In this document: positions 3,716 to 52,572 of the stretch, in pieces
Position numbering within the stretch: the stretch's first letter is position 1
Layout of the letters: each line of letters opens with the position of its first letter
Assembly (NCBI RefSeq): GCF_026571515.1
Contig: NW_026858315.1
Span: 1 to 64,000, forward strand
DNA: 64,000 nucleotides
Source of the DNA: Ruditapes philippinarum
Lineage: Eukaryota
Reading direction: 5' to 3'
Program-made: the position numbers and the translations under genes
The notes under the pieces: generated by a model
What the model was told of the DNA's origin: nothing
Database searches by the model: none
What the model saw: only the letters and a program-made list of their open reading frames with translations

Positions 3716-3931
3716 GAGCCGCGTCACGACAAACCCAACATACATGTACTGCGTTTGCGACCAGCATGGATCTAGACCAACATGCGCGTCCGCGCAGTCT
3801 GATCAGGATCCCTACTGTGCGCTACCAGTTTCTCTACTTGAAATGGAGTTGGTAAGCGAACAGCATGGATCCTGATCAGACTGCGCGGATGGTCGCAAAC
3901 GCACTTTATTGGTTTTGTCGTGACGCTGCTC
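3716..3931. mobile_element. Palindromic Sola-like MITE, copy 1
   Basis: GAGCCGCGTCACGACAAA...TTTGTCGTGACGCTGCTC; long inverted arms; AATT on both flanks. Confidence 0.85.
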
Positions 3932-29990: not shown

Positions 29991-30733
29991 ATCATCGTTC
30001 CTTGAACACCTCTTTATTGTGTTATAAATTGGCATCGAATGCTATTCATTAAAATTTTTAAAATAGGGACCAAGAAAAGTATACCATTTCTCAAGACCCT
30101 AACACCGGTCCCTGTGCACGAAAATGACCAAATTAATTGGCTCTAATTATGATAATTAAGTTATATCCCAATTTAGTTTCTAGGTGAACCGATTGCATTC
30201 CCTAATTGATAAGATTTCAATATGAAATAGATATATTTAAATTTGTTTAAGATCGTGATCATAGAAAAATTAGTGTTGTTATACTAAGATATGACCGTCA
30301 CGATGATGTGATGTTTGTCATGATTCCTTTATGGTTTATTAACATCTGTTGGAAGACATATATTTCATCCTTGTTTGATGTCATTTTAAGGCTATTAACA
30401 TGCGAGCTTTATCAACACTTTGTTGTCTGACCTACTCTCAAATTCAAGTTTGCGCAATTCTATTTCGAACATAAGGTCAATTGTTCCTAAAATTGAAGAA
30501 AGAACGAAATTTGAAAACTGCCATAGTTAATATTCAGTTTTTTAGATTGTCAAATCAAAATATAACCATACATTTTAACATACAAACTTTCTGTTTTGTA
30601 ATGTATGGTCGATTCCATTGAAAAGTTGGAAAAAGTCTGTAAAGGTGCTTGAGATGAAGTCTTAAACGATATCGTGTTAGGTCGGGTTATTTCAAGATGT
30701 TTTATATGTGATTTTAATTTGAAAAATAAAAAT

Positions 30734-30968
30734 GAGCTGCGTCACGACAAAACCAACATAGTGCGTTTGCGACCAGCATGGATCCAGACCAGCCTGGGCA
30801 TCCGCGCAGTCTGATCAGGATCCATGCTGTTCGCTATCAGTTTCTCTACTTGTTATAGGGTCTGTATGCGAACAGCATGGATCCTGATCAGACTGTGCAG
30901 ATGCGCAGGCTGGTCTGGATCCATGCTGGTCGTAAACCCATTATGTTGGTTTTGTCGTGACGCGGCTC
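30734..30968. mobile_element. Palindromic Sola-like MITE, copy 3
   Basis: AAAT|GAGC...GGCTC|AAAT. Confidence 0.9.
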
Positions 30969-31079
30969 AAATGTTTTCCAACTAATTGATTTATTTTTAT
31001 ATTTGATCTAACTACAAATAATTACAGTCATTTATTGTTATCAGCAGCAGCTATGCAATAAAATTCATTAGTAAAGAAA

Positions 31080-33150: not shown

Positions 33151-34084
33151 ATTATCTTGTCTGGCTACAAGCTGATTATAAAGGCCAATATGATCACTCG
33201 AAGCAGACTAAGTGTAAAGAAGTATGCAATTCGTATAAAATGCTGATTATAAAAAAAAATAAATATTACATGATACAGTAAATAGGTTGATCAGCTTATT
33301 CCAGATACGTAAAACATATTGACCGGTACAGGTAATTAAATATCATTTAAATGTTATGTTTTGCACTAGTTGTTCAAGAATTTCTTTTTTTTTCAACAAA
33401 AGCTCGGTGAAAGAAATGGTCAGTGACTTACATAAATGAACAGATATTTGTCCAAATGATTGCTTAGATAATTCATTCACATGGCAAAATAATGTGAGCA
33501 TTTGTCATTTAATAATAAAAGTGCAAAACTATTAAAAACAGCGTGTAAAATTTACGCATATATGTAACTGAAATCAAATGAAATGTTGTTTTTTTTTCGT
33601 GCCGGAATGTTTTTTTTGTTCTCCTTTTTATTTTGTTATAAAGTGAAAATATTATCTTTACTTTAATATCAATAGAATGATAGGTGTACAATTGGAAATT
33701 TCCAGTTAAATCGAAAAATCCAAACAGTTTTCTTTCAGTGACAAGTTTCAATCTTTAAGACTTCCAATAAATGAGCATTAATTGTTCCAGAAAATTTGTT
33801 TGATAACAGCAAAAATTAAAATTAAAACTAAAATCATGAAAGGTCGTTTAACACGACAGAATACAAACATGTTGTATTCTTGAGCTGACTGAAGTAATAG
33901 AAAGTAATGAATGTGATTAGGCAGTCTATTGCCAACCCCAGCATCGGCTTAAATGTGTGTACTTGGTCCGGAAGCAACAGGCGAGACTATTTTCTTACTT
34001 GACATAATAATAAATATTTTAGGTATATATTAAACATGACTGGTTAATTTTGTAGCAGTCAGCTGTTTTTTTAAATCATCATAT

Positions 34085-34305
34085 GATCCGCCCCATGACA
34101 AAACCAACACAATACGTTTGCGACCAGCATGGATCAAGACCAGTCTGCGCATCCGCGCAGTCTGATCAGGGTCCATACTGTCCGCTTACAAACGGTATAA
34201 CAAGCAGAGAAACTGATAGCGAACAGCATGGATTCTGATCAGACTGCTGATCTGGATTCATGCTGGTCGCCAACGCATTCTGTTTGTTTTGTCATGGTGC
34301 GGCTC
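34085..34305. mobile_element. Palindromic Sola-like MITE, copy 4
   Basis: ATAT on both flanks; ~100 bp upstream of the peptide gene 1 TATA box. Confidence 0.85.
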
Positions 34306-34405
34306 ATATAATCATCTAATACGTCTCATTGTGATTTTCACTACCGATGTTGTATGCATATGATAACACAGGGTTCGTATCATGCCCTTTTATGTCACAT
34401 TCAAA

Positions 34406-34471
34406 TATAAAAAGGTATCGCATTCTTCCTTGACATTCACACAACTGGCGTCGGACACAGAAAATAAACAG
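34406..34471 (+). promoter_or_regulatory. TATA box and short non-coding exon 1, peptide gene 1
   Basis: TATAAAAAGG at 34406, donor CAG|GTACAC at 34471/34472; homologous to the copy 2 promoter (TATGTCACAT.CAAATATAAAAAGG.ATCGCAT). Confidence 0.7.
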
Positions 34472-34874
34472 GTACACTTGACATTTCATATATACATTGT
34501 ATTTATTTTTATATAAGAGAATGTTATTGAATTGACATTGGAGCCGACAAAATCTGTATGATTTATGTTACTTAACAAGAATGTTTTAATTAAAAAGAAA
34601 CAGTCTTGTAAAGCGTTAGATCAGATAAATATTAAAACACTGAGATTATAAACATTAGGGAAACAATTTACGTACGATTTCTTGACCATTTACAACCTAT
34701 TCCTACAATTAAGTTCAGCTCACGTTTATGAAATCAGAACTTATTTATGTCATCACTGTGTGTTTTGTTCCCTTCAAGATATAAACAAGTATAATGTTAT
34801 ATGCGAAATTTTCCAGATCAATTCAAAAATTAAGTAATAATATCTTTAATATGCTAAATCTATAATTAGGAAAC

Positions 34875-36239
34875 ATGAAGATTGCCATCCTTTTACTTGC
34901 TGTGTTGCCATTTGTACTGAGTGCAAAGATTGACGACAAACGTTTTATTGAGTCCTTGCTAGGCGGATATGACAGTAAGATCTTAGCTTAATAAAACATG
35001 CCCCTTTTCATTATGACTTCTATTTATTGAACAAGAATAATCATATGTTGATATTTTCTATTAATACTTTAAGATTCAGTAGGCTCATCTTTAGGTTAAT
35101 TATAATTATTTATTGGAACTTATAAAACGACTGTTTTTAAATGACATTATATATATATTCATACGGCATGCTGTTTTATCTTACATAGTTGGTAGATTTA
35201 CAGCGGCACACATCTTTTCTGTGTGTACTCAAAATATGTTTATTTGAAATTTTAAAAGAGACTAAATAGCAATTATCGGTATTTTCAAATATCAAATTAG
35301 AGGGAAAAAAGTCTTTTATAAATAGCATACAGTATGCATTAGCTAAAAGTATAGCTAAAAGGTTTATCATCAATATTATTGTTGTTTTGTTTCATTTATG
35401 AAAGTTAAGTAAAAAATTGTGCCTGGAAATATTCAACAAACTAATATTAATATAATTCTTTACTTAAAATTTACAGTTTTGCAACTTGCTGAGCAAGTTC
35501 TTGGTCAGTTTGGATGTGACGAGACCGAAGCTCAGTGTGAAAGCACAATGTGCCCGAGTGTTCTCAACAAAATAGACGGCCACAATACTTTCATCACTAA
35601 TTTAGTTTGTGTCGCCGTTTGCAAAGAGTACGTATACAAATAATTTAGCCGTGTCATGACAAAACCAACAAAATGGGTTTGCGACCAGCATGGATCCAGA
35701 CCAGTCTGCGCATCCGCGCAGTCTGATCAGGATACATGATGTTCGCTATCAGTTTCTCTACTCGTTATAGGGTTTGTAAGCGAACAACATGGATCCTGAT
35801 CATAATGCGCGGATGCGCAGGCTGGTCTGGATCAATGCTGGTCGCAAACGCATTATGTTGGTTTTGTCATGACACGCTCAATTCATCTGAAGTAAAAATG
35901 TCATACGAAATGTAATATTTTTAGTGTTTTAGGAGATTTATTAAATTAGAATATAATCATGTTATGCATCACACTAGAGACTTTTTTTAAACTTGATTGT
36001 CAATCATCTTTGGCGTAAAGACTTTACTTTTTATCGGGAATTGTTTATTTCACATTTCTTTCAAATTCTGAATTCTAAAATGTACGTGGATATTTTATCT
36101 TGAATTTTTTTTTCCGAAATAAATCAAGCATTATCTAGAACATTTATTTCGTTTCAGGGCTCAAGTGCTATCAAAACAATTTGCACATGGTCCAGTAAAT
36201 GGAGTTGACCCATGCACCGGTGGAATTTCTGGACGTTAA
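34875..36239 (+). CDS. Secreted 6-Cys prepro-peptide, copy 1 (110 aa), unassigned family
   Basis: Exons 34875-34974, 35477-35627, 36158-36239: MKIAILLLAVLPFVLSAKIDDKRFIESLLGGYDILQLAEQVLGQFGCDETEAQCESTMCPSVLNKIDGHNTFITNLVCVAVCKEAQVLSKQFAHGPVNGVDPCTGGISGR*; ATTAAA at ~36291. Confidence 0.93.
35646..35879. mobile_element. Palindromic Sola-like MITE, copy 5 (intron of peptide gene 1)
   Basis: AATT on both flanks; 18 nt after the splice donor. Confidence 0.85.
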
Positions 36240-36387
36240 ATACATATATCGAATTAAAATAATTGTTTACATTATTTGTAAACGTCTGATATTAAAGATG
36301 CTTAAAAATTTCTGTTTTTTTTTGTATGTTTAATACTTTCTGTGAATCAGTCATCATTATTTTACTTATGTACTGAACATAAAATTA

Positions 36388-37085
36388 AAACAGTATCGAG
36401 AGCGATCAATGATCATATGTATCGCCTGATTATAGCCAACTGTGTACTGTTATCAGGTTAAAACACATTTTCATTCTATGGCCATAACTCAGTTTGAAAT
36501 CATTTAAGCGATTTAAGCGGAAAAGCCGTGCAATATGCGCAAGGACTTGATCTAGCGATCAATCCTGTAAAGTTTCATTTAATTTGCATAAGAGGTAAAA
36601 GAGACGTAGTCGGAAATAATGTTTAAAAAATAAAAATCATAACAGGGCCATAACTTTGACAAAGTCGTTGAACCAGAACATGCTGACGATAAGCACAATA
36701 AAAGGGACCCCTATAAAGTTGTGGCGACTTTGTAGATGTATCAGCTTCTGTGTAGATGGCTATACAAATTCATTATCAGGCCAGAAACACCTTTTAATCA
36801 AGGGCCATAACTTTGTAAAAATCATTCGAGTGGAAAACCCATGTTAAATGTGCAAATACTTGAACTACCGATCAATCCAGTTAAGTTTTATTGCAATTGC
36901 AGTACTGGTATCCAGACAAATTTTAGAATTAAAAGTAATAAAGGGCCATAAATCTGACAAAAATCATTGGTCTAGAAAGTGTAAATGTCGTCGATATGTA
37001 TTAGAAGATTTGGTACTAATCATTTCTGTAATGTGCAGATGATATTGAAGCACGCGGCACAAAAAATCTAAAACCATAAAGGGGC
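36388..37085. mobile_element. Decayed Helentron/HINE-like remnant
   Basis: GGCCATAA motif recurs at ~145-170 bp period (36481, 36646, 36803, 36943), as in the units of 31080-31893. Confidence 0.45.
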
Positions 37086-37767
37086 TCCTCTAAGGTAGTT
37101 TTTTTTTTAAACAGAAGGGACTGTATTTATTTTCGAGAATTGTGTACCATTCGATGAAGGTCTGAATTGACGTGAACGTACCCTCACTACGTTTTCCCAA
37201 AACATTTTATTATTATTGCGCAAATGATAAAACATTTTTTGAAAAGGGGGCATAGGTTTTAAAGTCTGTATATTACGGATAACCTGTCACACAAAAGACC
37301 ATTTTAAAAAAGTAGACAACATATGCCAATAGCGATATTACAGTATCCAATGGTAGTACTGGAACAACCCAGCTAGATAAAACGCTAAATAAAAAAAAAA
37401 CTAAAATAGCCACAAAACATCAATCATGAAAAGAAAAGAAATATAACAACTCTTACTGAAAGTACGAGGCGACATTTAACGGTCTCAGCACGACACAAAT
37501 AACGCTGACGTAGCGATAAAATAGAGAAAAAAAAAAAAAATTCCTACAGAACGTGCAAAATGGCAAAAATTGAAATATTGCAAGCTCGATTTGGTTGAGC
37601 ATGTTCATGGACGGTTCTTTTAATGTAAAACTTTGAAAAAATCATTGCAATTTGTTTGAAAAAATTCGTGCAGAAACCTTTTACTGCAATCATTTGTCTT
37701 TTAAAGAAACGTAAATGCACTCCCATTGATCTATCAATAATGAATTAATTAACCATGTATTTGCGAT

Positions 37768-37835
37768 TATCATCATCATCATTATTATTATTTTTATCAT
37801 TATTATCAGTATTATTATTATTATTATTATTATTA
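37768..37835. repeat. (ATC)/(ATT)n microsatellite
   Basis: Direct reading. Confidence 0.85.
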
Positions 37836-39463
37836 CCTGTAATATTGATCCTACATATATTTTCATAGAACATTATTTCTCTTTGCGAATGTGATGAATT
37901 TGAAGACACATATCATTACTTTTGCAAGTGTCCACACTTAAATATACATGTAGAACGTGCTAAACTTCTTGAAAATCCAAAATATTACAACTTACAATAC
38001 ATCTATTTGGTGATACTGACCTCTTAAACGAAGCAAAAAGACCCATCTTCTTACATTCACAAAACAAAACAAAAATCAGTTATAAAATAACCCGTTTCTC
38101 CTATTTTCTCTTTCCCCTTCTATTTAACATAGTACTTAAGATAATGTGAATTGTGGCATTAGACACCTAGTCACAGGGATTATTGTGAAATTTGGCTTAC
38201 TTGAAGGTTACTGTATCACACTCATATATTTATCTTAAATAAAAATGGAATAATTCTTGTTCGTTTCTCAAACAGAGTCTACATACTCCATTTTACCAAA
38301 GTGATCACTGCACTTTTTGTACCTCTGCGCCACTCGTGAAATATACCTTTTGGTGCTCACTCGGTGAAATATATTCCGATCTTACACTGAACTAAACAAA
38401 TATCCTCTATGTATTTCTTAAAGTGAGAGATCCTTTAATAACTCTGGATAGTTTGGATAGTTAAAATGATTCATGTTTACTTCTTATTTTGATAAATATA
38501 AAAATGAGTAAACTGACAGATTCTGACGCATATAAATGAAATATATACTTGTAAATGGTATTCGTCTTCAATATCTGAAGAGTTGCAGCCTAACTTTTAT
38601 GTCATTTTCATATCCGTCAGTTTGCACTTTTAAAGCGGCCTTCAATTTTTATTTTCCTTTAATTTTGTGTTGTTTCAAACTAAGTATTTCAGTAATTTTT
38701 TCTTGGTGAAGTGTAATATATCATTGTTAAACCTTCTTCAAGTGTTCCGAGAGCTTTTCATAACGAGTCAGTGACATTCGTGTCTAAAAATAGAAGACCA
38801 GGGCTTAAATAATTGAAATATAGAGAGTATACCGATAGATTATAGATATTGAAGGGTTTCCTTATTGTTTACGTATTTTATCGTCGGCAGATTTCATTTT
38901 GTTTATCTTAATCCTTTTGATTTGACAGTTTCTTAATCTTTTTGATTTGACAGTTATTGTAACAATTTGTCTAAAAATAACATATCTAATCGTTAGAAAA
39001 GCTGAAGGCCGCTTTAAGAATAAAATGCTTATTCGAAATCTAGCTCTACTGAAATAAAATCTATTAGAAAACAATTTGACAAGATTAACATTAACGTTTA
39101 ACACTTCAACACTTTTGGGCAATGCCATAAATAGTGGTACATGACTCCCCAATTTAAAGGATGCCTATGTATTAGACACAGATATTTTGAATGTTTGAAA
39201 GAAAAACTTCCAAAACAAACTGTATTTTTAAAAACATTTTCTTACTTTAAATGCACAGAAACTTAATGTTAGTAAATTTAGGTATAAGCAAAGATGTATA
39301 TTTACATCTTTATATACTCAGTGACAAGGCATAGATGACTAAAATGTTGAAACAATTTGCGCTATCAATATTGCATGTATAATATACACATGCATGTATT
39401 ATGATAACCCTGTAACATTTGTCGTTGGCATTTCTTATCATGCCATGTTATGTCACATACAAA

Positions 39464-39518
39464 TATAAAAAGGGATCGCATGCTCTCTTGTCACACAACT
39501 TGGACTTTCAATAAGCAG
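39464..39518 (+). promoter_or_regulatory. TATA box and non-coding exon 1, peptide gene 2
   Basis: TATAAAAAGG at 39464; donor CAG|GTAAAC at 39518/39519. Confidence 0.7.
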
Positions 39519-39812
39519 GTAAACTAGAAATTTTAGGTATTCATTTTTATATAAGATCATTTATGTTTGAACTCACAAAATCTGTATAGGCAAGAATGTA
39601 TGAGGAAAACCAGAGAAGTTGGGAGTCCCTCATTAATTTATCTAGCGCTGGTCAGCTAAAATATGTTTACAAAATTCATAATATTCTTCACCCCTAAGGC
39701 TCTTTTAACATAGACCTTTTAATACTTATTGTCATACATTTTTTAAATTTCAAACCTTTCCTACAGCATGTTACTCTATTAAGTTATCGTAGTGTTTTCT
39801 GATTAAAGAAAT

Positions 39813-40047
39813 GAGCCGTGTCATGGCAAAAGCAAGATAGTGCGTTTGCAACCAGCACGGATCCAGACCAGCCTGCGCACCCGAGCAGTCTGATCAGGAT
39901 CCATGCTGTTCGCTATCAGTGTCCCTACTCGTTATAGGGTTTGTAAGCGAACAATATGGATCCTGATCAGATTGCGCTGATGCGCAGGCTGGTCTTGATC
40001 CATGCTGGTCGAACAGGCACTATGTTGGTTTTGTCGTGACACGGCTC
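39813..40047. mobile_element. Palindromic Sola-like MITE, copy 6 (5' intron of peptide gene 2)
   Basis: GAGCC...GGCTC; flanks AAAT/ATTT (imperfect duplication). Confidence 0.85.
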
Positions 40048-40411
40048 ATTTATGTATGAGAGATGCTCGAAAGCATTGGAAAAAAAACGAACGTCCATGA
40101 CTAGTCAATTTGATTAAGATTGTCCATTAGAGACAGTAAATATAGTCAAGTCGTAGCTAATGCCTTCAACACTTAAAATGTTCGAATTAAAAATCCAGAA
40201 GGACTATAAAAACATAGAAGTACTAAGATGAAAGACGATACTTTTTACATAAACTTTCTTGTCCATTATTTAATACACTTTCGAACAAATTCGTTCAGTA
40301 GTCATTTAATTATCTTAGTTTTTACAAAACATTTTCTTTGTGATTTACGAGATTTTCCATATCAATGCACAAAATAAGTAATGATATTTAAAATATTTAT
40401 AATTAGGAAAC

Positions 40412-41249
40412 ATGAAGATTGCCATCCTTTTGCTTGCTGTGTTGCCATTTGCATTGAGTGCAAAGATTGACGACAAACGTTTCATTGAGAGTTTACTGGG
40501 CGGATATGACAGTAAGATCTTAGTTGCACCCTTAAATTTAATGTTTTGAACAATCATACTATGTACATTCATGTACCCATTAATATCTTATGATAACTTT
40601 TAAACTGCTACAATCATAAAAATGTACCATTAATATCATGAAAGTTAAATGAATGATTGTGACTGAAAATATCAAACGGATAAATATTTGTTTATAATCC
40701 TTTATATCTATTCACAGTTTTGCAACTTGCTGAACAAGTTCTTGGTCAATTTGGATGTGACGAAACTGAGGCTCAATGTGAAAGCACAATGTGCCCTGAT
40801 GTTGTCAACAAAATAGATGGCCACAATGTTTTCATCACAAATCTACTTTGTGGCGCAGTTTGCAAAGAGTTCGTATACAAATATTTTATTATGAATATGC
40901 TTTCTCTAGTTAAAAAGATCATTTCCGAATTTAAATATTTTGAGTTTAAGGGTGATATTTAGGAACATGTTTTACATATCTTTAGAGACGTATTTTACGA
41001 CTAGATTGTCAATTTACTTAAACGTAAAGAATAAACCTTTTAGAAAGGAAACATTTATTGTTCTTTTCTTGAGAACACTAAATTTTGTTTTAATACATGT
41101 ATGTTCGTAATATAAAGGGATATCTTGAAACTAGTTTGTTTAAAAAAATACATTAATTTTGTTTCAGGGCTCAAGTACTGGCAAAACAATTTGCACATGG
41201 TCCTGTAAATGGAGTAGACCCATGCACCGGTGGAATTTCTGGACGTTAA
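40412..41249 (+). CDS. Secreted 6-Cys prepro-peptide, copy 2 (110 aa)
   Basis: Exons 40412-40511, 40718-40868, 41168-41249: MKIAILLLAVLPFALSAKIDDKRFIESLLGGYDILQLAEQVLGQFGCDETEAQCESTMCPDVVNKIDGHNVFITNLLCGAVCKEAQVLAKQFAHGPVNGVDPCTGGISGR*. Confidence 0.93.
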
Positions 41250-41494
41250 ATACAGTTATCAAATGAAAGTTATTGTTTACATTGCTGGTGTACATCTTAT
41301 ATTAAAGATTATTACAATTCTTCTGTTTGGTTATTTATTTTTCTTCTTGGTCAGACATCATTTTTTTCTTCAACTTTCTTATTTATTAGAAATGTAATTG
41401 ATAGAATATCTAAGGTATTTTACAAACAAACTGAATTACCGTAATATTTTCATGGATGGAATGTCTATTAAAGATGAGAGAAATACTAACAAAC

Positions 41495-41760
41495 GGGGCG
41501 CCCGTGACCAGTGGTAAAGGTCGTTGACTTCAGACCGCTGTGAGTTCGAATATCGACAGGGACTATGTATTCTTTCATATGAGGAAGCTATCTAGCTAGC
41601 TTGCGGAACGCCTATGGTTCTATCCGGTTCCGGTGCCTGAAATAATGCATGGAAGGGCACCTGAAATCTCCCTCAACCAGTGAAGCTGAAACGTCGCCAT
41701 ATGACCTATAAGGTGTCCGTGCGACGTAAAACCCAAGGAACAAAAAACAAACAAAGAAAT
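41495..41760 (+). mobile_element. tRNA-derived SINE
   Basis: A-box-like GTGACCAGTGGTAAAG, B-box-like GAGTTCGAAT, body with GGTGCC..GGCACC and CATATGACCT, (AAAC)n tail; related 3' fragment at ~63290-63445. Confidence 0.75.
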
Positions 41761-41825
41761 AAAACAAAAACAACACACATACAGAAAAACAGTATAAACA
41801 CGAAAAACAAAAACAACAACAGAAA

Positions 41826-41879
41826 CCACACACGCACGCACGCACACACCAACGCACACACACGCACACACACGCACAC

Positions 41880-41918
<39 letters not shown>
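41826..41918. repeat. (CA)n/(CACG)n microsatellite
   Basis: Direct reading. Confidence 0.95.
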
Positions 41919-41923
<5 letters not shown>

Positions 41924-42240
41924 CTAAATTATTAATACATTAAAGATAAAAATAAAAGCTTAAAAATTATATTTGTATTATATTTGTATAAATACGTAAA
42001 ACCAAATTAAAGCACAAAACATTGCAATATGATTAAATAGTGCCGTGTAGGGAAAGTCCTTTCGCTGCAATTTGTCTATTTGATAGAAAGTATTGGCACT
42101 ATTGGTGTTTTTAAGAAAAAGACATTAGTCCTGTATTTGTTATGACATGATCACAATGTCACCTTTAATTAATGTAGGTCATTCAATGCTTATCATGTTG
42201 TCATTTTATGACACTTGTATGTCCTAATTTTTTTATAGAG

Positions 42241-42295
42241 TATAAAAAGGACACATCTCACCTCGGTATATCACTGATAGGACTCCATCTGAAAG
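42241..42295 (+). promoter_or_regulatory. Candidate TATA box and non-coding exon 1, peptide gene 3
   Basis: TATAAAAAGG at 42241, donor AAG|GTAGC at 42295/42296; same TATA-to-donor spacing as copy 2. Confidence 0.55.
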
Positions 42296-43821
42296 GTAGC
42301 AATGATCTTTCTTTCTTTTCTTAATTCTAATAATAATGTTTTAGATTTTTTTAACTGGCATAATAGTTTTGATTATGCTTTGAAGACAGTGCTTATTGAC
42401 GAGTTGTATTTTCTGTTGTTTTTTTATCTAAAAATTTTATTTGTTTCTATAGTTTCAAAGCAATGTTAGTTCCACTAGAAGAGAACAAAACTATTATTTA
42501 GATGTGTATATGTAACTTGAAACATATGGTACTAAATGTAAAAAGACGTACGAAGATAATAAACAATCATTTATTTAAAGTTCAACATTAAATAAAAAAT
42601 TGCATATACATATAGTAAGTGACTCTATAAAACTCTGGATAGTTGAATTATTTCAACTTTAGTATCTGAATTCAATATTTATAAAAATAAATAAACTTAT
42701 AGAATACGGACATTTTATTACATCTTGTTTTGAAATATTTTCTTTTACTTTGAATATCAATGGGATGTACAAATGGAAATGATACTCATCTTCAATATCA
42801 GAAGAACTGAAGCATAACTTTTCTTACATATTTATATTTGTAATATCTGCCAGTTTGTACTCTTAAATGCAAACTAGTTATCCCTAAACTACAAAAATAA
42901 AATCTAAAACATCTTGACAAGATATGACAAGTTCAAACTCAAAAGTACTCAAATGTAGGTTTAACGTTATATAATATCATACACAATTTATAACTTGTCT
43001 TGAAACAATTAATTTAATAGCATACACATTATTAGTAACATACGAAAATAAATAATCATCCGATAGTTTTTTTTCCACTTTTAAAAACAGAATTTTTCTC
43101 TAGATCATTTATCCTGTTTAGAAAGCCCACACTGCCCTTGATTACTTTTGAATTTATGTCAAATACATTATTATCAGAGTTATCATCGTGCAAGAAGCAA
43201 TTGGTTTTCTTAAGAATGTCGCTTACAGAATAATATAAATCAAAATATAAAGACGGACCTTGTTTGTTCAAATAACTATCTATCTACTTTTTCCTCTTTG
43301 ATTGCCATTGTTATTTCAATTTTTCATATTTCACATAATACCAAGGCAACTCATTTTCTCTTCATTTTATACTTAACTGAAATTATTTACATTTCATTTA
43401 TACCGGTTTTATAGAAGTTCTACCATTACGTCTGATGAGCACTTATACAACAACAGTGTACTTATCTTTCTGTCTTATATGGTTGAATATTCCTACCATT
43501 TCCATTGTATTCACATACATTTTGTATATGTATTTACAAGGTATTCTATATGTATGATACAATAAAATCAAAAGTGTCATTTGTTCCATCCATTAATATA
43601 GAATAGTGTGCTTGGAGATTATTTTTCAAGAAAAATTATGCGACTCCAGGCCGATATAATCAGTAAATTTATGAAAATCGTGATGAAATTGTTTAAGAAA
43701 CAAAATCAGATTTTAGAATGTACTAAAAATACTCCGGTTATAAATGATAAATACATATAGTTCGTAATTATTTCATCAAGAGTAATAACTGGTAGTAGTT
43801 CATTCATTTGTAGCTGAAAAC

Positions 43822-44852
43822 ATGAAGATTGCCATCCTTTTACTTGCTGTGTTGCCATTTGCCATGAGTGCAAAGATTGACGACAAACGTTTCATTGAGA
43901 GTTTACTGGGTGGATATGACAGTAAGATTCAGTCCAATAGAAACATTCCTGAAAAAGCCACATTTAGCCTAAAATGAATACATTTTCTTTTGAAGAATTG
44001 GGGAAAATAATACATGTATAGTAGTTCATACTTAGTCTATACATTGTAATAGTGGATTTTGACCATGTTCAATTTAAGCAAATTTTAAAGTGCTCTGGTC
44101 AAGTGTAATAATTTGAACACTGTAACACTCACAATAAGCTTTTAAAAAGTTAAATGATATCATATTAAGTATATCGACTTGTCATTAGGAATACTTAATA
44201 TAGAACATTTAAGCTGCTAGTATTAAAACATGAAAATAATCTATCAATGTTTTTATTTATGAAAGTTGTATTTTATGTATGAAACTATAAAATGTATAAT
44301 CATGTTATAAAATCTTAATTATCACTTTCTTTATAGTTCTTGCCCTTGCCAATCAACTTCTTAGTCAATTTGGATGTGACGAGACTGAAGCACAATGTGA
44401 AAGCACATTGTGTCCACAAGTTCTCAACAAAATAGACGGCCACAATACCCTCATTACAAATCTTGTCTGTACTGGAGTTTGCAAAGAGTTCGTATACACA
44501 CATTACAAAATAAAAATACTATTTTTTTGTCCAAACCTATCTAAAATATTTATTAACTTACAAATTAGACATATGCTGTAAACTATAATATAAGAAACAT
44601 TTCACTTCGTTAAACGAAACACACTATACTACGTCTTTTAAAAGTACTAAATCAAATGTAATTGTATTTTAATCATTGCTAAATATGTTTATTTCCTATT
44701 TTATATGGTAAAACAATAATATTTTCATCAAATTCTAACATAATTTATCAAATATATTTTGTCTTTTCAGGTCTCAAGTGCTAGCAAAACAATTTGCACA
44801 TGGTCCAGTCAATGGGATTGACCCATGCACTGGTGGAATTTCTGGACGTTAA
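43822..44852 (+). CDS. Secreted 6-Cys prepro-peptide, copy 3 (110 aa)
   Basis: Exons 43822-43921, 44337-44487, 44771-44852: MKIAILLLAVLPFAMSAKIDDKRFIESLLGGYDILALANQLLSQFGCDETEAQCESTLCPQVLNKIDGHNTLITNLVCTGVCKESQVLAKQFAHGPVNGIDPCTGGISGR*; AATAAA at ~44875. Absent from the ORF track. Confidence 0.93.
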
Positions 44853-44972
44853 ATATGTTAATATGCAAAAATTGAATAAATAAAATATTCCATATAAACA
44901 TGATTGTTATGTGATTTTTACTAATTTTGGCAAATTAACAATCGTGAATCTTGTCACTCTATGAGAATAAAT

Positions 44973-45204
44973 GTGACGCGTCACGACAAACCAACATAAT
45001 GGGTTTGCGACCAGCATGGATCCAGACCAGCATGCGCATCTGCACAGTCTGATCAGGATCCATGCTGTTCGCTATCAGTTTCTTTACTTGTTATAGGGTC
45101 TGAAAGCGAACAGCATGGATCCTGATCAGACTGCGCGGATGCGCAGGCTGGTCCGGATCCATGCTGGTTGCAAACCCATGGTTGGTTTTGTCGTGATGCG
45201 ACTC
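44973..45204. mobile_element. Palindromic Sola-like MITE, copy 7
   Basis: AAAT on both flanks; the paralogous site at ~48577 is empty. Confidence 0.85.
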
Positions 45205-45983
45205 AAATGTATTACAAATGAATAACGGAAAATGTGTATAATATATCTGCCATTAAATAGATAATTTTGAAGCATTGTCAACCATATCAATTAAAAGCAC
45301 TTTTATCCATCTACAGAACGTTTTAATAAATCAATTATTTGTTAACGTAATGCAGCATTGATGTTATGTCTTTAATCTATGTTTAAGAGTCATTAAAATG
45401 CAACGTTTCTTACGCTTACCATACTAAACTGCAACCGTATCGTTCACCATATGCAACAAGATATTTCAGCAACGTTAAGCAAAATGGTTTTCTTTTTTCT
45501 ATGTTCAATATGTTATAAGTTAAATAGCTAAAACACTCCTGCATTTTATTAACATTCGGATTGAAAATGTCACAGTGTCACTAATCATTATGGCTATTTA
45601 ACAATTGCTGAAATTTTGAAATCATTCGATTATCTTTCATAAAATTATAGTTACTTTATATATCCAAACTACATAACAATTAACAGTCGTTTCAGAACTG
45701 AATGTGGTGAAATCCCTTTCTAAGTTTTACAGTTTCTGATTGAACTTTTTTCACTTGAAAGTGTATATTGTAAGTGTAAATATCCAGCAAGCTGGAATTA
45801 CTGCTCACAAACCAAACCAAACAGAAAACAACACAGTGATCAATCTAAATTACAAATGGTTCTTTTATTATATATTATATGGTATTGACTATTTCTGTTA
45901 AATACTGTTCTGTTCTAGATACCACTGTTTATCACCTGACCTTTACGGAAATTAATGAAGTGCCAGGTCAATATTGTTGGACA

Positions 45984-48400
45984 ATAACGAATCAGTTTGA
46001 ATTACCGTTATTTAACCTTCTTTACTTTCTTTACTTTCTTTAATAGAAGCAATGAGTTCAAACTTTGACTAATTGCAAAATATTTCTATAAACTGAAAGT
46101 TCAAAAAGCAATATACCGAATCACTTTACTCATTGGTAATCTATAGAATAGATTCATTGTCAAAGAAAAAAAATATTGACATACATATCACGTTAATACC
46201 TCCTACTTTAGCTACTTTAATTTAAACATAAAGGTTAAAGATAGGAGAGTGTGGTTATCAAAAGGCTGTCATAAATAAACCTCTATTAATCTCATCAAAA
46301 ACAAAGTACTCAAAACGACACACAATATTAAAGCATAAAAGAGTAAGTTGTATTGAGTAAGTAAAATTGCAAACAAGGATTATACATGTTCTTGCGGAGG
46401 CAGATCAAAGAACGTTTGATAATTAAAATCAAGTTATTTATGTTTCGTATTTCTTGGTTTAGGTTGAGCTTTATTAATGTTTGAACCACAAATTTGTGCA
46501 TCTTGTACTGCTCTTGAAACCATTCAATTTTAAATTCATGTTGGATTAATTTTATGCAATCAAATGAATGTAACTATTAGTGAATTTAAATCAAACATAT
46601 TAAACGAGCTTAATGGCGTGTTTTTAATTGTTTAAGGCTCAAAGTGCATGTTTTTGCATGAATCTGCAGTGATAGCATAAAAAACATTAAAATAGTTTTG
46701 ATAGAGTGTTTACAGTTCGGGGCAAGATTTCTACCCAAGCGTCAGTGGTAATGGCTTGAAAATGGAAAGGCAATAATAAGTTAATTTCTGTCAAAATTTG
46801 GTTTCCATTTTATGGAAAATATGCCCATCTATCCTGGAGTATACAGTTACTTTGCGTCTGACTTGGCCTTAACCGCCGTTTTATTTGGTTATATTTCATT
46901 AAGACACACATATATTTAAAGAATTGAATTGAGCTGAGTGTATGCTAATGATTAATGCTGAGAAATCTAGTATGTTCATTATGTACAATTTTTTTTACAT
47001 TGATATAAACATCAAAACGTTTTAAATTATCTTCTAACATGTGTACCAAAACATTGCTAGTCCGTTCACCCTTGATCTGATAGAGATAACATCTGATTTT
47101 TATAGCGTTTCTTATAAACACACTAGAGTAACATTTACAAAGTTCAGTTTCTTAAGATTTATGTGTTTTATGGCAGTTTTTAAAGATTTTACTATGTAAA
47201 TAGAGGCAATTGATAAATTATATATAATATGAAGACCTTCCTTTCAACGGACCTTGTTGGTATTAATTTACATGTATACAAGTGTTCTTTAACACGTGAT
47301 TATGTAATGCTATTGGAAAATTAAGTGGTCAAAACTTTGTATCAAATATTTAAAATGTAGTACTGTCAATAGGTCTCTATGGTAGATAAACAGAACATAA
47401 CTATGTTAGTTAAAGAAGTGAACAGTTTATGCTTAACTTGTTATCCAAAAGGAAGAGTGAAATATTTCTGTTCTTATGAACTATATGATAGTACTTTATC
47501 ATGTTTTTAAGCAATGAAAAGTGTCTCAATAAATGTGTTTAGATTGGTTTTTACATTTAAATGCTATGTATTTTTTTCATATTGTAATGTGATATGTAAA
47601 AATGAGACAATAAACTATATAAACTATCTAATTTATTTTAAAAGCAAACAAATCATGACTTCATATGACAAAAAATAACAGTGGTCGGCTTTTTGATCCC
47701 TTCACATTATCGCCTACCACATTATGCGAAATTGTCATCACCCACTTAAAACTGCCCACTTTTAAACCTACCGCTTACAATTGAATTAGTTTACTTTCAT
47801 GCAAATTTGCTTAGTTCTTTAACACTGCACTAAAAGGATTTTCGATAATTCGACGCTTGAACTGATTTTAATATAAGTATAAACATACTTAACATTGTGT
47901 TATATTTAGCGCAACTTGCATGACTCAATGCGGTTTAAAGTATATTTTTGACACATGAAAAATTCAACATAATTAAATTCTTTTTGAAAATAAAAGAAAT
48001 CTGTGCGAACTTTAGGTGCACAGCCTTGATTTCAGAAAAATAGGTGGATATGACTAGGTCTTTTGGCATTCTCCATTAATTAAACCTTAGCTTATATGAT
48101 GTTCAAACTTTTCAAATTTATTGTAATTTATTGAAGCATGTTAGGAAAGAGAGAAAATAAGAATCCATAAAAAGCGTCAAAAACGGAAAATGGAAAATGC
48201 TGTAGACTCGGTTTGATTGGGCCTGTTCATGGATGGCACTGGAAAGTGCAAGGTAACGTCCACGCCTCCATACAAAAGTAATGTTAGTATTCTTATATAG
48301 GTTTTTACAATATCAGTTTGTACATATCCGTTATATACTAACGAATAACACAGCATATGTCAAAACTGTTAAGTTTAATTTCAAAGAATACTTTGAACAT
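45984..48400. repeat. Segmental duplication block B, direct repeat of ~54481-56414
   Basis: Collinear identity from ATAACGAATCAGTTTGAATTACC to TACTTTGAACAT, with indels. Confidence 0.9.
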
Positions 48401-48460
48401 TTTGCACATGGTCCAGTCAATGGGGTTGACCCATGCACTGGTGGAATTTCTGGACGTTAA
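48401..48460 (+). pseudogene. Orphan 5'-truncated last exon of peptide gene 3 (FAHGPVNGVDPCTGGISGR*)
   Basis: Near-identical to 44793-44852, no splice acceptor, no upstream exons; starts duplicated block 48401-49648 (copy of ~44793-45900). Confidence 0.88.
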
Positions 48461-48703
48461 ATATGTTTATATGCAAAATTGAATAAATAAAATATTAAAT
48501 ATAAACATAATTTGTCATGCGATTTTTACTCATTTTGGCAAATTAACAATCATGAATCTTAACACTCTATGAGACTAAATGTTTGTCCAATGAATATCGA
48601 AAAATATGTATAATATAACTGCCGTTAAATAAATAATTTTGAAGCATTGTCAACCATATCAATTAAAAGCACTTATGTCCATCTATAGAACGTTTTAACA
48701 AAT

Positions 48704-48929
48704 GAGCCACGTCACGACAAAACCAACATAGTGCGTTTGCGACCAGCATGGATCCAGGCCAGCCTGCGCATCCACAGTCTGATCAGGATCCTGCGCTTAC
48801 CAACTCTATTACAAGAAGAGAAACTGATAGCGAACAGCATGGATCCTGATCAGACTGCGCGGATGCGCAGGCTGGTCTGGATCCATGCTGGTCGCAAACA
48901 CACTATGTTGGTTTGTCGTGACACGGCTC
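48704..48929. mobile_element. Palindromic Sola-like MITE, copy 8
   Basis: AAAT|GAGCC...GGCTC|AAAT; the paralogous site at ~45328 is empty with a single AAAT. Confidence 0.9.
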
Positions 48930-50162
48930 AAATCAATTATTTGTTAACGTAATGCTGCATTGATATTATGTCTTATTTCATGTTTTAGAGTCATTAAAAT
49001 GCAATGTTTCTTACGCTTACGTACATACAATGGGTTAAACAGTATTCAATCGACAACGCTTAAAGAACATTGTAATAAAAATGATGACAACTGACCAGAA
49101 AAATAACAATGATATCGAGTAGGGGACAACGTTTTAAAGCCACCCCCTTGTTGTAACTGGTTGATTTGTATTTCAACCATACTAAACTACAACAGTATCG
49201 TTCACCATATGCAACAAGATATTTCAGCAACGTTAAGCAAAAGGGTTTTCTTTTTTTATGTTCAATATGTTATAAGTTCAATAGCTAAAACACTCCTGCA
49301 TTTTATTAACATTCAGAAGGAAAATGTCGCAGTGTCACTAAGCATTACTATTGCTATTTAACAATGTTGTTTTTTTTTTTAAATCATTCGATTATCATTC
49401 ATAAAATTATAGTTACCTTATACATCCAAACTCTTTAAACATGAACAGTCGTTTCAGAACTGAATGTGGTAAAATCCCTAAGTTTCACAGTTTCTGATTG
49501 AACTTTTTTCATTTGAAAGTGTCTATTGTAAGTGTAAATATCCAGCAAGCTGAAATTACTGCTTTCAAACCAAACAGAAAACAACAAAGTGATCAATCTA
49601 AATTACAAATGGTTCTTATATATTATATGGTATTGACTATTTCTGTTAATATACATATCCTTTAAAGTTGTCCGAATCCTTTTTTACTTCTTAAGAAATT
49701 GAAAATAAAATGATTTCAAATATGAGAATTAATAATTATACTCGTATTTAAACTGCGCACGCTGGTATTCAAGAAAAAACATACATAGAAAGTGCGCGAT
49801 ATAAAAACAGTTTATTGCAATGACGGCCAAATGTCCATTGCAATCGCACATGCACTTGGAAAGCATGGCGAAATGGTTCATTATACGAAATAAAAAAATA
49901 AAGGATTAAGATGTATATTTTTATGCAAGAATATCGCTTACGCACCTTTTTTGTGCACCAACATCTACAGGTTAGTCCTCTGGCTTGGGCTTAAAATGCG
50001 CCCACGTGGGTCTCCAGATGTTAATGCACGAAATATGAGGCATATATATATATTGTTATTCAATGTATATAAATATGGTCAACTCTTGTTATCATTGCAT
50101 CAAATGACCTTTCTTATCGTGTCCATTTTCGACAATTATGTGGCCGGATTTGTTCTCGCCCT

Positions 50163-50227
50163 TATAAAAGGACCGGAGATTCCTTCAAGAATACAAGTAA
50201 ATCATTCTCTCGGACTTACTAAAACAG
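50163..50227 (+). promoter_or_regulatory. TATA box and non-coding exon 1, peptide gene 4
   Basis: TATAAAAGG at 50163; donor CAG|GTAACA at 50227/50228. Confidence 0.65.
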
Positions 50228-50852
50228 GTAACAAGAATATAGATGTTTCAGATAAATAAAAGCATTGATTTATAGAATAGAATACGTAACTTAAACTGTT
50301 TTTGGAATTGAAGAATATTAATCTTTAGAAAATTGGCGAATATGATTAATTATTCTGTGAAAAATGCATACTATTATATCTACTCTTTGTTAGTGTATTA
50401 AGGATATATAGTAATTGTGAATGTTTGTTATAGGCAGAGAGAGAATGAGCAGGTTTTACATGAATTTCTGAAATGGAATATTTTAATAGGGAAAATTTCT
50501 TTTTTTTATTATATTACTTAAATTATGTGCATTAAAATAACGGAGGCAGCATTTCATAAAATTATGTCGAGTTAATTCCACAACATAACTGTTGACGTTT
50601 TTAAATCAAAATTTTATTAGTTTAAATAATAAGTTGTTTTTAATTTGGCTTCATGCCATTTAAGAATTTAATTTGTTCCACCATCTATTAAAAGCCGTTA
50701 ATGTTTCTCTCGTCTAAAACTAAAAAAATAGCTGACGTTGTGTTTCTTTTTTGAGCTCTAACAACACGTTTCTGCATTTTTATTTAATCTTCATATCTAC
50801 ATTATTGTTTATATTGTACTCATAATTACTTTCTCTATGTTCATCAGGAACA

Positions 50853-52572
50853 ATGAAGATTGCTATCTTTTTACTTGCTGTGTTGCCATTTGCCATGAGT
50901 GCAAAGATTGACGACAAACGTTTCATTGAGAGCTTACTGGGAGGATATGACAGTAAGATATGTCTATAAAATGAGCCGCGTCACGACAAGACCAACATAA
51001 TGGGTTTGCGAGCAGTATGGATCTGCGCAGTCTGATCAGGATCCATGCTGTTCGCTATCAGTTTCTCTACTTGTTATAGAGTTTGTAAGCGAACAGCATG
51101 GACCCTGATCAGACTACGCGGATGCGCAGGCTGGTTTGGATCCATGCTGGTCGCAAACGCATTACGTCGGTTTTGTCATGCCGCGGCTCATATTTTATGA
51201 CACAATGCTACAAAACTTACAATACAACCTATATACCAAAATAAATGTAACATGATTGTGTAAAAACTATGTTGTATAAAAATAAAGAATTAGCAAGTAT
51301 ACATATGCATTTAAACGAGAAAAACATCATATCCTTTTAACTTATCATTGTTTTGTACAATTCAGTATATATTCTTCCTACAATGAAAGTACCATAAAAC
51401 AAATGCTGCATTTAAGAAGATGAAGCAATCACCATGTGATAATTCCATGTGAAATATTATCTATTTAATTGTTAAATAATGATCAAAGATAAAATCTCAA
51501 AATTTACAATTGTATTTCATTATCGTCTTTGTTTCGCGAAATATTATTCAAATTATTGAGTTAAATGACATACAATCTTTAGTTTTACAATGCATAAATT
51601 GTTGAAGTATCAAATACTTTCTTATGTGTGCCATACAGATTGACAGAATTCAATTTTTGACTGCAAATATTTAAGCTGAATATATTTATTTTAGTTTCAA
51701 GTTTGTTTTACACAGTTTTTATAGTGAAAAACTTTATAAAATTAGTGAAGAACTTTATAAACAAATTTATCCATTAAAATGCAGGAATATACTTATTAAA
51801 AAAACAGTTGCTAATCGTTATATTTTCTACTTGTTTTAACCATCATCTGTTTTTTACAGTTCTCAATCTGGCCAATCAGCTCCTTAGTCAGTTCGGATGT
51901 GACGAGACTGAAGCTCAGTGTGAAAGAGAATTATGTCCACCACTTCTTGACAAAATTGACGGACACAATGCCCTTATCACCGGACTGGTCTGTGCTGGAG
52001 TCTGCAAAGAGTAAGATTATTTCTATTTTTATGATAAACTAACATTGTTATGAAATTTTTATTAGTGGGTAAAGTAATGTTTTGCAGCAAATATCCAAAT
52101 CATTTTAAAACAATTTTTTTAAAGCGACTATTTGGGAAATCGATATTTTTGTTATTATAGATGAAACCAAACTATAACGGGACACACGGTGCTTAAAATA
52201 AGGTTGAATGTACAGTTTTTGATAAATCATATTAGAAATTTCAGTAATTATATAGTTATTGTAGATTTTGACATACTGGTACATTAGCTGTTAGTCTTTA
52301 CGGCCGATGACGGATGTATATTATCGTGTCTCTTTTTAAGTTATTTTTAAAAATCTGTATATCTTATATCGGAGAATATTAATGGAGATATTCTAGTTCG
52401 ACAAATTGTTCCATTTGATTGTTTAAATTTATATCATAGTTACACGTCATTCCTCATATATTAAAACTTATTTACATTTTATTTCAGAGCACAAGTTCTG
52501 TCAAAACAATTCGCAAATGGTCCCGTAAATGGAGTTGATCCATGTACTGGAACAGCCACCAGTGGTCGTTAA
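50853..52572 (+). CDS. Secreted 6-Cys prepro-peptide, copy 4 (111 aa)
   Basis: Exons 50853-50952, 51860-52010, 52488-52572: MKIAIFLLAVLPFAMSAKIDDKRFIESLLGGYDILNLANQLLSQFGCDETEAQCERELCPPLLDKIDGHNALITGLVCAGVCKEAQVLSKQFANGPVNGVDPCTGTATSGR*; AATAAA at ~52616. Confidence 0.93.
50973..51189. mobile_element. Palindromic Sola-like MITE, copy 9 (intron of peptide gene 4)
   Basis: GAGCC...GGCTC; flanks AAAT/ATAT; 20 nt after the splice donor. Confidence 0.85.

Follow-up and report, generated by a model that had tools for sequence, protein, structure and literature searches.

What is produced by an array of similarly built genes in the genome of the clam Ruditapes philippinarum, and in what capacity might the product act? 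The window (the whole stretch of DNA that was analysed, 64,000 nucleotides of contig NW_026858315.1) contains four complete genes in tandem at 34.4-52.6 kb on the + strand, as read from its exons and open reading frames (Table 1). The initial annotation had described four intact paralogs of the same architecture (TATA box, candidate short non-coding exon and coding exons of 100, 151 and 82-85 nt), and all four were re-derived. The coding exons of each copy measure 100, 151 and 82 nt (85 nt for the last exon of copy 4), yielding precursors of 110 amino acids in copies 1-3 and 111 in copy 4, and all introns in the four copies have GT..AG ends and phases 1 and 2. In 4/4 copies a conserved promoter block with TATAAAA(A)GG precedes an equally conserved AG/GTA donor by 54-65 nt. 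The leader, the AKIDDKR pro-piece, the FIESLLGGYD start, the C-x6-C-x4-C-x18-C-x3-C-x20-C framework and the S-G-R-stop ending that had been reported are present in all four products.

Table 1. Features of the gene array, in window coordinates.
Feature	Position	Strand	Evidence or content
Copy 1 TATA box and short 5' non-coding exon	34406..34471	+	TATA 34406; donor AG/GTACAC at 34471; block conserved 4/4 copies
Copy 1 first coding exon	34870..34974 (coding 34875-34974)	+	ATG 34875; signal peptide, AKIDDKR, FIESLLGGYD start
Copy 1 middle exon	35477..35627	+	151 nt; Cys1 to Cys5
Copy 1 last coding exon	36158..36239	+	Cys6, ...GGISGR-stop
Copy 2 TATA box and 5' non-coding exon	39464..39518	+	promoter/donor block conservation
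Copy 2 first coding exon	40407..40511 (coding 40412-40511)	+	ATG 40412; RNA contig ends at 40511
Copy 2 middle exon	40718..40868	+	exon reading; RNA depth
Copy 2 last coding exon	41168..41249	+	exon reading; RNA junction; product = P0035
Copy 3 TATA box and 5' non-coding exon	42241..42295	+	block conservation; RNA contig; P0020 junction
Copy 3 first coding exon	43814..43921 (coding 43822-43921)	+	ATG 43822
Copy 3 middle exon	44337..44487	+	exon reading
Copy 3 last coding exon	44771..44852	+	exon reading; RNA joint
Copy 4 TATA box and 5' non-coding exon	50163..50227	+	block conservation; P0022 junction
Copy 4 first coding exon	50848..50952 (coding 50853-50952)	+	ATG 50853
Copy 4 middle exon	51860..52010	+	exon reading
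Copy 4 last coding exon	52488..52572	+	85 nt; ...GTATSGR-stop
Truncated last-exon relic (fifth copy)	48396..48460	+	homology from TTTGCACATGG onward; open to stop; acceptor absent

Between copies only the exons align, the introns having diverged, and comparison of the gene copies gave dN/dS ratios of 0.11-0.22 at dS 0.4-1.0. Since the exons alone are alignable, with such ratios, and are transcribed and spliced, the array is not a product of chance. It consists of four active genes under purifying selection. The relic of a fifth copy belongs to a segment (48396-49360) that is a 92% identical duplicate of 44788-45600, the 3' flank of copy 3, and at least two further gene copies are located on another R. 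philippinarum contig. The TATA box and non-coding exon of copy 3 sit 1.5 kb upstream of its ATG, and the copy 2 intron that follows the 5' non-coding exon carries a palindromic repeat insertion.

In RNA contigs of two studies, word depths over the exons were 10^4 to 10^5, against 0 in the adjacent introns and spacers; for the middle exon of copy 2 the depth reached ~164,000 in X1, and 0 in the introns on either side. The predicted junctions, including that of the copy 1 5' non-coding exon, are seen in these contigs, which bears out the spliced-transcript model. One contig joins the copy 1 non-coding exon (...AAATAAACAG) to GAAACATG. In copy 2, contigs stop at 40511, at the 40511/40718 junction, and run on with the initial letters of exon 2, and the junction between exons 2 and 3 (40868/41168) is derived from loose contig ends at 40869 and 41168; direct RNA support for the 5' non-coding exon of this copy was not seen in the RNA contigs examined. 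For copy 3, a contig connects ~42289 to ~43812, that is, the non-coding exon to the first coding exon, and a joint from 44487 to 44771 leaves out 283 nt bounded by GT..AG. The abundance of the mRNA is very high and sample-specific: in whole-sample RNA libraries it stands tenfold above the signal pooled over a repeat found genome-wide, and two other RNA runs gave next to no signal for the array exons. Exon words are present in seven RNA studies, which argues against a transcript limited to a few neurons.

The spliced products of copies 1 and 2 match the R. philippinarum RefSeq proteins P0021 and P0035 exactly, and those of copies 3 and 4 are contained within P0020 and P0022, models that use the non-coding exon junctions of copies 3 and 4, respectively. 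In these two models the start codon is an ATG that precedes the TATA box, and the 32-44 extra residues before the signal peptide are probably a modelling artefact. The relevant RefSeq genes (LOC132752778, LOC132752779, LOC132752780 and LOC132752789) are recorded as 'uncharacterized protein', with no name, function or literature attached, and a literature search on the array sequences and gene identifiers found no paper containing them. Thus, these genes are annotated yet unstudied. The proposal of an undescribed family holds insofar as no characterised family was matched by Pfam, PDB sequence or fold searches, but the genes themselves were already in RefSeq.

Homologues were found in molluscs only. 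Single-unit genes occur in the Imparidentia bivalves Mactra, Mercenaria, Mya and Dreissena, whereas Solemya, a scallop and a snail have multi-repeat polyproteins with KR between the units. The polyprotein relatives have the same N-terminal motif after KR, RR or RK at the repeat boundaries, Pro/Ala/Thr-rich linkers, and a C-x3-C ... C-x3-C pattern in two predicted helices. Each species retains 3-7 or more paralogues that vary in the segments between their cysteines; the first ten mature residues show almost no variation in four bivalve families, and a D-G-H-N loop is invariant in the homologue alignment. The six-cysteine framework, present in all four copies, is confined to venerid and mactrid sequences among those found, and the core of the family has four cysteines (Cys2 to Cys5), which are universal. 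Cys1 and Cys6 co-occur, both being found in Ruditapes, Mactra and Mercenaria and neither in Mya and Dreissena, and in one plankton transcript lineage an extra Cys pair is placed differently, in equivalent regions. By sequence comparison, these proteins form a mollusc-restricted, so far uncharacterised family of apparently secreted peptides, whose database entries bear no label other than "uncharacterized".

A leader of 16-17 residues, recognised by inspection (M-K, a hydrophobic run and V/A-x-S at -3/-1 before AKIDDKR) and conserved in all homologues, would direct the ~110-residue precursor into the secretory pathway. A subtilisin-like convertase would then cut after the Arg of AKIDDKR and free the near-invariant FIESLLGGYD N-terminus, a carboxypeptidase would remove the C-terminal Arg, and peptidylglycine alpha-amidating monooxygenase would turn the C-terminal Gly into an amide; the product may leave the cell by the regulated route, as the initial annotation proposed. 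P_proprotein (PF01483) and Cu2_monooxygen (PF01082) domains are encoded at many loci of the same genome, among which the specific enzymes are not singled out. An Arg directly precedes the F[IL][ED]xLL start in 25/25 homologues, within a KR site in 16 and an ER or DR site in the remainder. Mya and several Dreissena genes have a monobasic DR/ER in place of KR, without an upstream basic residue; as judged from sequence, this is not a textbook convertase site and counts against the processing model. As for the proposed amidation signal, the C-terminus is G, GG, GK, GR or GRK in 20 of the 22 homologues that are complete, despite variable tail length and sequence (the terminal Gly is missing in the other two). 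The polyprotein repeats have no Gly ahead of their KR sites, and amidation is therefore not family-wide. That the Arg and the terminal Gly are conserved supports the processing model, and the clam peptide is probably trimmed and amidated.

The predicted product is an acidic, mostly helical peptide of 85-86 residues (~9 kDa, pI ~4.3); computed values are 4.2-4.4 for pI, -6 to -8 for net charge and +0.1 to +0.2 for the GRAVY index. In agreement with the helical structure suggested earlier, both AlphaFold runs placed helices at residues 21-29, 34-45, 51-67 and 71-93, though in models of low confidence (mean pLDDT 56-58), and fold searches with these models returned background scores only. Cys2 to Cys5 would hold the fold, probably by pinning the two central helices as a hairpin, and a lineage-specific Cys1-Cys6 bridge would anchor the tail to the second helix; the latter pairing is proposed because both residues are present or absent together by lineage, and because of the displaced pair in the plankton lineage. 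Neither the window exon products nor P0021 matched any Pfam family at E up to 10, in line with the initial view that defensins, big defensins, macins, insulins and attractins are not matched, and a PDB sequence search gave no match.

Several known systems share features with the clam peptide. Saposin-like proteins (SapB_1/SapB_2) are, as is predicted for the clam peptide, helical, acidic and ~80 residues long with three disulfides, probably nested; prosaposin, like the relatives of the clam family, is a repeat polyprotein cut apart at linkers, and invertebrate saposin-like members are abundant secreted effectors. However, the saposin pattern, with two closely spaced cysteines at either end, is unlike the clam spacing, and to our knowledge saposins are not amidated. 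By profile and Cys pattern, membership in SapB was rejected: P0021 has no Pfam match at the above threshold, and SapB is absent among the matches listed for 27 other relatives. The best saposin-like chain in the fold search, 3s64 (Z 4.4, rank 17), was within background for a low-confidence model, and in view of the model quality and the background fold scores the analogy is one of general properties. Precursors of the crustacean hyperglycaemic hormone (CHH) comprise a signal, a short pro-piece, a basic site, a helical three-disulfide peptide of 70-85 residues and a Gly-basic end. The CHH/ion transport peptide (ITP; Crust_neurohorm) and eclosion hormone families follow the same logic as the clam precursors: their helical six-Cys peptides are 60-85 residues long, and many members also have a Gly-basic signal for amidation. 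These are arthropod neurohormones with other Cys spacings, whereas the clam family conserves only four cysteines and is expressed at levels much too high for a neurohormone. Assignment to CHH/ITP (PF01147) or eclosion hormone (PF04736) was rejected as neither gave a Pfam match, the sole link being an eclosion-hormone cluster ranked third in the ESM Atlas at 0.79, a score that shuffled proteins often reach and that lies below the level of evidence. Plant alpha-hairpinins, which are also excised from multi-unit precursors, and the TMEM59/BSMAP luminal motif (PF12280) show the C-x3-C ... C-x3-C pattern of the polyprotein relatives, whereas the window peptides have C-x4-C ... C-x3-C and extra helices on both sides. 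Two distant relatives match PF12280, and only P0017 from Batillaria passes (30.8 bits, cut-off 25), with a score added up from three partial hits that each cover 37/197 profile positions (18-54). BSMAP/TMEM59 was also rejected, as the window proteins gave no match.

Overall, the explanation that we consider best, with modest confidence, is a tandem array of active genes for a processed, amidated peptide of a mollusc-restricted family. For the role of this peptide, we tentatively favour an abundant extracellular effector of non-neural secretory tissue that may act on lipids, membranes or microbes in a saposin-like manner, rather than a neurohormone. This reading draws on the similar size and acidity, the predicted disulfide-locked helices and the repeat-polyprotein ancestry; against it, most membrane-active defence peptides known to us are not acidic, unlike the clam peptide. 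Strong purifying selection and an N-terminus that hardly changes would be expected of a receptor ligand just as much. A signalling peptide (hormone, growth factor or waterborne pheromone) with a specific receptor, for which FIESLLGGYD and the amide would serve as recognition elements, is nevertheless rather unlikely. Its precursor layout is that of the CHH precursors, the ten N-terminal residues hardly vary in four bivalve families, dN/dS is 0.11-0.22, and the eclosion-hormone cluster ranks third, though with 0.79, below the level of evidence. However, an mRNA tenfold over the pooled repeat and found in seven RNA studies is unusual for a neurohormone, 3-7 or more paralogues per species with variable segments between the cysteines also speak against signalling, and the hormone families gave no Pfam match. 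Moreover, no string from the scallop polyprotein occurs in the main text of a survey of scallop ganglion neuropeptides, and the names of the 13 novel precursors listed there do not point to it. A broader version is a mollusc-wide peptide system in which an ancestral polyprotein that released many copies of a four-Cys helical peptide gave rise to single-unit amidated arrays in Imparidentia, with an extra disulfide in the venerid and mactrid sequences found, and in which the 9 kDa ligand (a hormone, larval or settlement cue, or pheromone) has a dedicated receptor; we regard this as unlikely.

It is improbable that the product is a soluble carrier of small hydrophobic ligands, analogous to insect chemosensory and odorant-binding proteins or plant lipid-transfer proteins. 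An acidic, ~9 kDa, helical, disulfide-stabilised and relatively hydrophobic protein, extremely abundant, encoded in tandem arrays and variable between its cysteines, would be suited to this task, and the core C-x4-C-x18-C-x3-C recalls, as a lead only, the C-x6-C-x18-C-x2-C of arthropod chemosensory proteins. Again no Pfam match was obtained at E up to 10, models with pLDDT <60 do not allow a cavity to be assessed, and we know of no such carrier that needs basic-site cleavage or an amide. Even less probable is a structural component of shell matrix, mucus or other secreted material, with the Arg and Gly as structural residues rather than processing signals. Acidity, strong expression and tandem arrays are consistent with a matrix protein, as are relatives that are repeat polyproteins with Pro/Ala/Thr-rich linkers and an invariant D-G-H-N loop that could bind a metal ion. 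Yet this is no low-complexity sequence, the Arg is retained exactly at the polyprotein repeat boundaries, and a terminal Gly that stays at the very end despite variable tails is hard to explain structurally.

The processing model makes a clear, testable prediction of a 9 kDa product with a FIESLL start, a Ser-amide end and three disulfides. The passage from repeat polyproteins to single-unit tandem-array genes offers a case study of peptide-precursor remodelling. Bivalves are major aquaculture and sentinel species with many abundant secreted products that have no assigned function, and this family is a candidate new effector or signalling molecule in clams.

A six-frame motif scan of the window recovered four first, four middle and five last coding exons, all on the + strand at 34.8-52.6 kb, and placing the splice sites on the DNA yielded four complete genes (copies 1 to 4). 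Their coding exons are 100, 151 and 82 nt long (85 nt for the last exon of copy 4) and are separated by introns of 206-907 nt in phases 1 and 2, with GT..AG at every intron. The ORF products have 110, 110, 110 and 111 residues, and all of them contain a hydrophobic leader, AKIDDKR followed by FIESLLGGYD, the framework C-x6-C-x4-C-x18-C-x3-C-x20-C and a terminal S-G-R-stop. The TATA box and short non-coding exon proposed in the initial annotation are borne out by a conserved promoter block, ending in TATAAAA(A)GG, upstream of every copy, and an AG/GTA donor is conserved 54-65 nt downstream of this block in all four genes. The 3' UTRs are short, with AATAAA or ATTAAA after each stop codon, and the window contains zero N. 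Searches with window sequence were run exon by exon, full-length work used public records equal to the spliced products, and exons were joined locally for translation, substitution rates and peptide properties.

Four RNA runs were mapped over 39400-44950. Two runs belonging to separate studies (X1 and X3) supplied contigs in which word depth over coding exons 1, 2 and 3 of copy 2 reached about 15,000, 164,000 and 60,000 (X1) and 680, 27,000 and 26,000 (X3), values which are pooled over the paralogues and not attributable to single copies because the contigs map at 95% identity. Depth over the copy 2 introns was 0 (X1) and about 20 (X3), and over sampled spacers 0 or close to 0 in both; beside such deep exons, these values identify the signal as RNA rather than contaminating DNA. 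The exons were nearly free of reads in two raw-read RNA runs from other studies, and deep coverage in two runs with almost none in two others indicates strongly sample-dependent expression. Exon words are present in RNA runs of seven studies. The predicted splice joints were found in RNA contigs: contig ends at 40511, 40718, 40869 and 41168 run on into the beginning or end of the adjacent exon, one contig fuses 44487 to 44771 with ends GT..AG, and another joins the final nucleotides of the non-coding exon of copy 1 to GAAACATG, a fusion confirming that this exon ends at 34471. The equivalent junction of copy 3 is represented by a low-depth contig linking about 42289 to about 43812.

Alignment between the copies is possible in the exons and nowhere else. 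The dS (0.4-1.0) and dN/dS (0.11-0.22) values between them indicate old copies, each of which is under purifying selection. The first coding exon shows the least synonymous divergence, and the middle exon has the most frequent replacement changes, its variable positions lying between the cysteines; this agrees with a companion note to the initial annotation. Chance ORFs are ruled out by the RNA evidence, this selection signal and the presence of homologues, and pseudogenes by the intact and constrained state of all four copies. The fifth last exon is an orphan within a duplicated segment. A MITE-like palindromic repeat of about 250 bp, which self-aligns in reverse, is scattered over the array introns and spacers; both of its strands are deeply covered by RNA reads that contain numerous variant letters and strand-switch joints, a signal pooled from many genomic copies. 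A long microsatellite lies between copies 2 and 3, and reads seem to be cut there.

Features of the array and of related sequences
Feature	Sequence	Position	Strand	Details
Orphan fifth last exon	window	about 48396-48460	+	lacks acceptor and first 25 nt; still open to stop
Duplicate	window	48396-49360		92% identical to 44788-45600 (end of copy 3 last exon and 3' flank)
Palindromic repeat	window	44966-45213, 3711-3891, 18768-19013, 30725-30981, 34080-34313		
Palindromic repeat, further copies	window	35639-35881, 39806-40065, 48697-48939, 50969-51193		
Microsatellite	window	41612-41917		(CA/TG)n-rich
Upstream ATG region, copy 3 RefSeq model	window	42208-42295		
Upstream ATG region, copy 4 RefSeq model	window	about 50100-50227		
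Second subfamily	clam genome G000, contigs C9355, C11664, C3980, C9826			loci L010-L013
Second subfamily	contigs C2241, C8325, C3681, C932			
Polyprotein	Solemya velum			585 aa, 6 repeats
Polyprotein	scallop Mizuhopecten			679 aa, 7 repeats
Polyprotein	snail Batillaria			partial, 4 repeats

On the 23,348-bp contig C4839 of the clam genome (loci L009, L007, L008) lies a second array, diverged from that of the window (82-93% identity) and collinear with it in reverse orientation; it is a segmental duplicate or else a strongly diverged haplotype. In its gene LOC132746266 (RefSeq), the 151-nt middle exon is present twice in tandem with 219 bp between the two; one resembles copy 2 and the other copy 1, and using both would break the frame. 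A further first exon at 861-959 of this contig resembles copy 4, with no copy 3 between.

Splicing of copy 1 gives a protein identical to Ruditapes philippinarum XP_060599139.1 (LOC132752779), and splicing of copy 2 one identical to LOC132752780; LOC132752778 includes the whole product of copy 3, and LOC132752789 that of copy 4. These matches identify the window as Manila clam DNA. RefSeq names all four "uncharacterized protein", so the genes are annotated but unstudied. The initial annotation had proposed a candidate undescribed family; no characterised family was matched, but the genes themselves were already in RefSeq. The models for copies 3 and 4 start at an ATG upstream of the TATA box, and the 32-44 extra residues preceding the leader are probably an annotation artefact caused by occasional upstream transcripts; for copy 3, such a transcript is supported by one contig with a depth of 23. 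In a full-text literature search, the sequence strings and the gene ids of the clam, scallop, Mercenaria, Dreissena and Mya genes occurred in no paper, and the scallop polyprotein is absent from the main text of a scallop neuropeptide survey.

A profile of the four middle exons gave 18 matches among 1.84 billion proteins, and the relationship is clear for the short ones. The species in which single-unit homologues were found are all Imparidentia bivalves (Mactra, Mercenaria, Mya, Dreissena), each with several genes; ocean metatranscriptomes and environmental contigs contain related sequences as well. Arg immediately precedes F[IL][ED]xLL in 25/25 proteins, as part of KR in 16 and of ER or DR in the rest, and mature residues 1-10 are nearly invariant. 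Among 22 apparently complete proteins, 20 end in G, GG, GK, GR or GRK, and this glycine ending is kept while the preceding tail varies in length and sequence. Such conservation of Arg and terminal Gly is the footprint that would be expected of endoproteolysis at Arg and C-terminal amidation, and it stands independently of the reasoning by which the initial annotation had proposed KR cleavage and an amide. The predicted processing path is well supported by this comparison: signal peptidase would remove the leader, the precursor would be cut after Arg23, the terminal Arg would be removed and Ser would be amidated with Gly as the donor. The same genome encodes convertase-type and copper monooxygenase-type domains. 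The predicted mature peptides of copies 1 to 4 have 85-86 residues and a computed mass of about 9.0 kDa, at 8,967-9,040 Da before correction for disulfides and the amide, with pI 4.2-4.4, GRAVY +0.1 to +0.2 and a net charge of -6 to -8, which rules out a classical cationic antimicrobial peptide.

Only four cysteines, Cys2 to Cys5 (numbered from the N-terminus of the mature peptide), are universal in the family. Cys1 and Cys6 are both present in Ruditapes, Mactra and Mercenaria and both missing in Mya and Dreissena, and one plankton lineage has the pair placed differently within the Cys1/Cys6 regions. We infer a Cys1-Cys6 bridge from these sequences, which would leave a nested hairpin (2-5 and 3-4) for the remaining four; pairing of adjacent cysteines is a possible alternative to the hairpin. 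AlphaFold2 was run on alignments of 14 and of 28 sequences, with a mean pLDDT of 58 and 56, respectively, and both models have helices at about residues 21-29, 34-45, 51-67 and 71-93 and a non-helical C-terminal tail at 94-110; at these pLDDT values, secondary structure alone was used and the tertiary fold was not trusted.

Foldseek comparison of the model with the PDB gave a best E of 1.3, against ribosomal proteins, and the best Z of VIA-align against 48,161 chains (5.8) was within the background for helical models, as was the Z of 4.4 for a saposin-like protein. In the ESM Atlas, the clam protein scored 0.81 or lower (eclosion hormone, 0.79) and the snail repeat unit had no usable match; a PDB sequence search with the family profile returned zero matches at E up to 10. 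Pfam searches with exon products, full-length homologues and 28 aligned relatives assigned the single-unit proteins to no family. In the wider family, the sole profile match is to PF12280: the snail protein matches its C-x3-C hairpin part, partially and with a score summed over repeats. The earlier statement that the peptide does not fit defensin, macin, insulin or attractin holds, with none of their defining sequence features found, and those of saposins, CHH/ITP and eclosion hormone are likewise absent.

Three relatives are polyproteins built of 4-7 repeats, with a unit of about 90 residues that can be aligned with the clam peptide. The unit combines an N-terminal helix motif, which reads FLESLL in the snail, with G-[ST]-D-x-T-E and C-x3-C ... 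C-x3-C, and the linkers are rich in Pro, Ala and Thr and end in KR, RR or RK, with no Gly before these sites. A second, more divergent subfamily in the clam genome, with copies on at least eight contigs, has G-S-D-P-T-E, the C-x3-C ... C-x3-C spacing and an extra Cys, and seems nearer to the polyprotein type found in other molluscs. A leader exon of its own (MKLFLVCLL...) is located about 1.3 kb upstream. As read from taxonomic distribution rather than a built or rooted tree, the single-unit tandem-array genes of Imparidentia probably derive from a repeat polyprotein. These genes appear to have gained the amidation signal, and the extra disulfide would have arisen later, in the venerid and mactrid sequences found.

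Very high mRNA levels in ordinary whole-sample libraries, multiple paralogues per species and polyprotein ancestry together indicate a product needed in bulk, which suggests an effector rather than a neurohormone. In defence and digestion, invertebrate saposin-like proteins have lipids and membranes as their targets, and the clam peptide resembles them in size, acidity, hydrophobicity, disulfide-locked helices and release from a repeat precursor. On these grounds, an abundant extracellular effector of the saposin-like general kind is the reading that we tentatively favour. The main alternative, a receptor ligand acting as a hormone or pheromone, would account for the near-frozen N-terminus, the predicted amide and the strong constraint; we consider it rather unlikely, and a carrier or structural role is less likely. 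Judged from its sequences, the family is an unnamed, mollusc-restricted one whose products would be a familiar kind of molecule, a processed secretory peptide, and its unusual point is the evolutionary change of precursor architecture.
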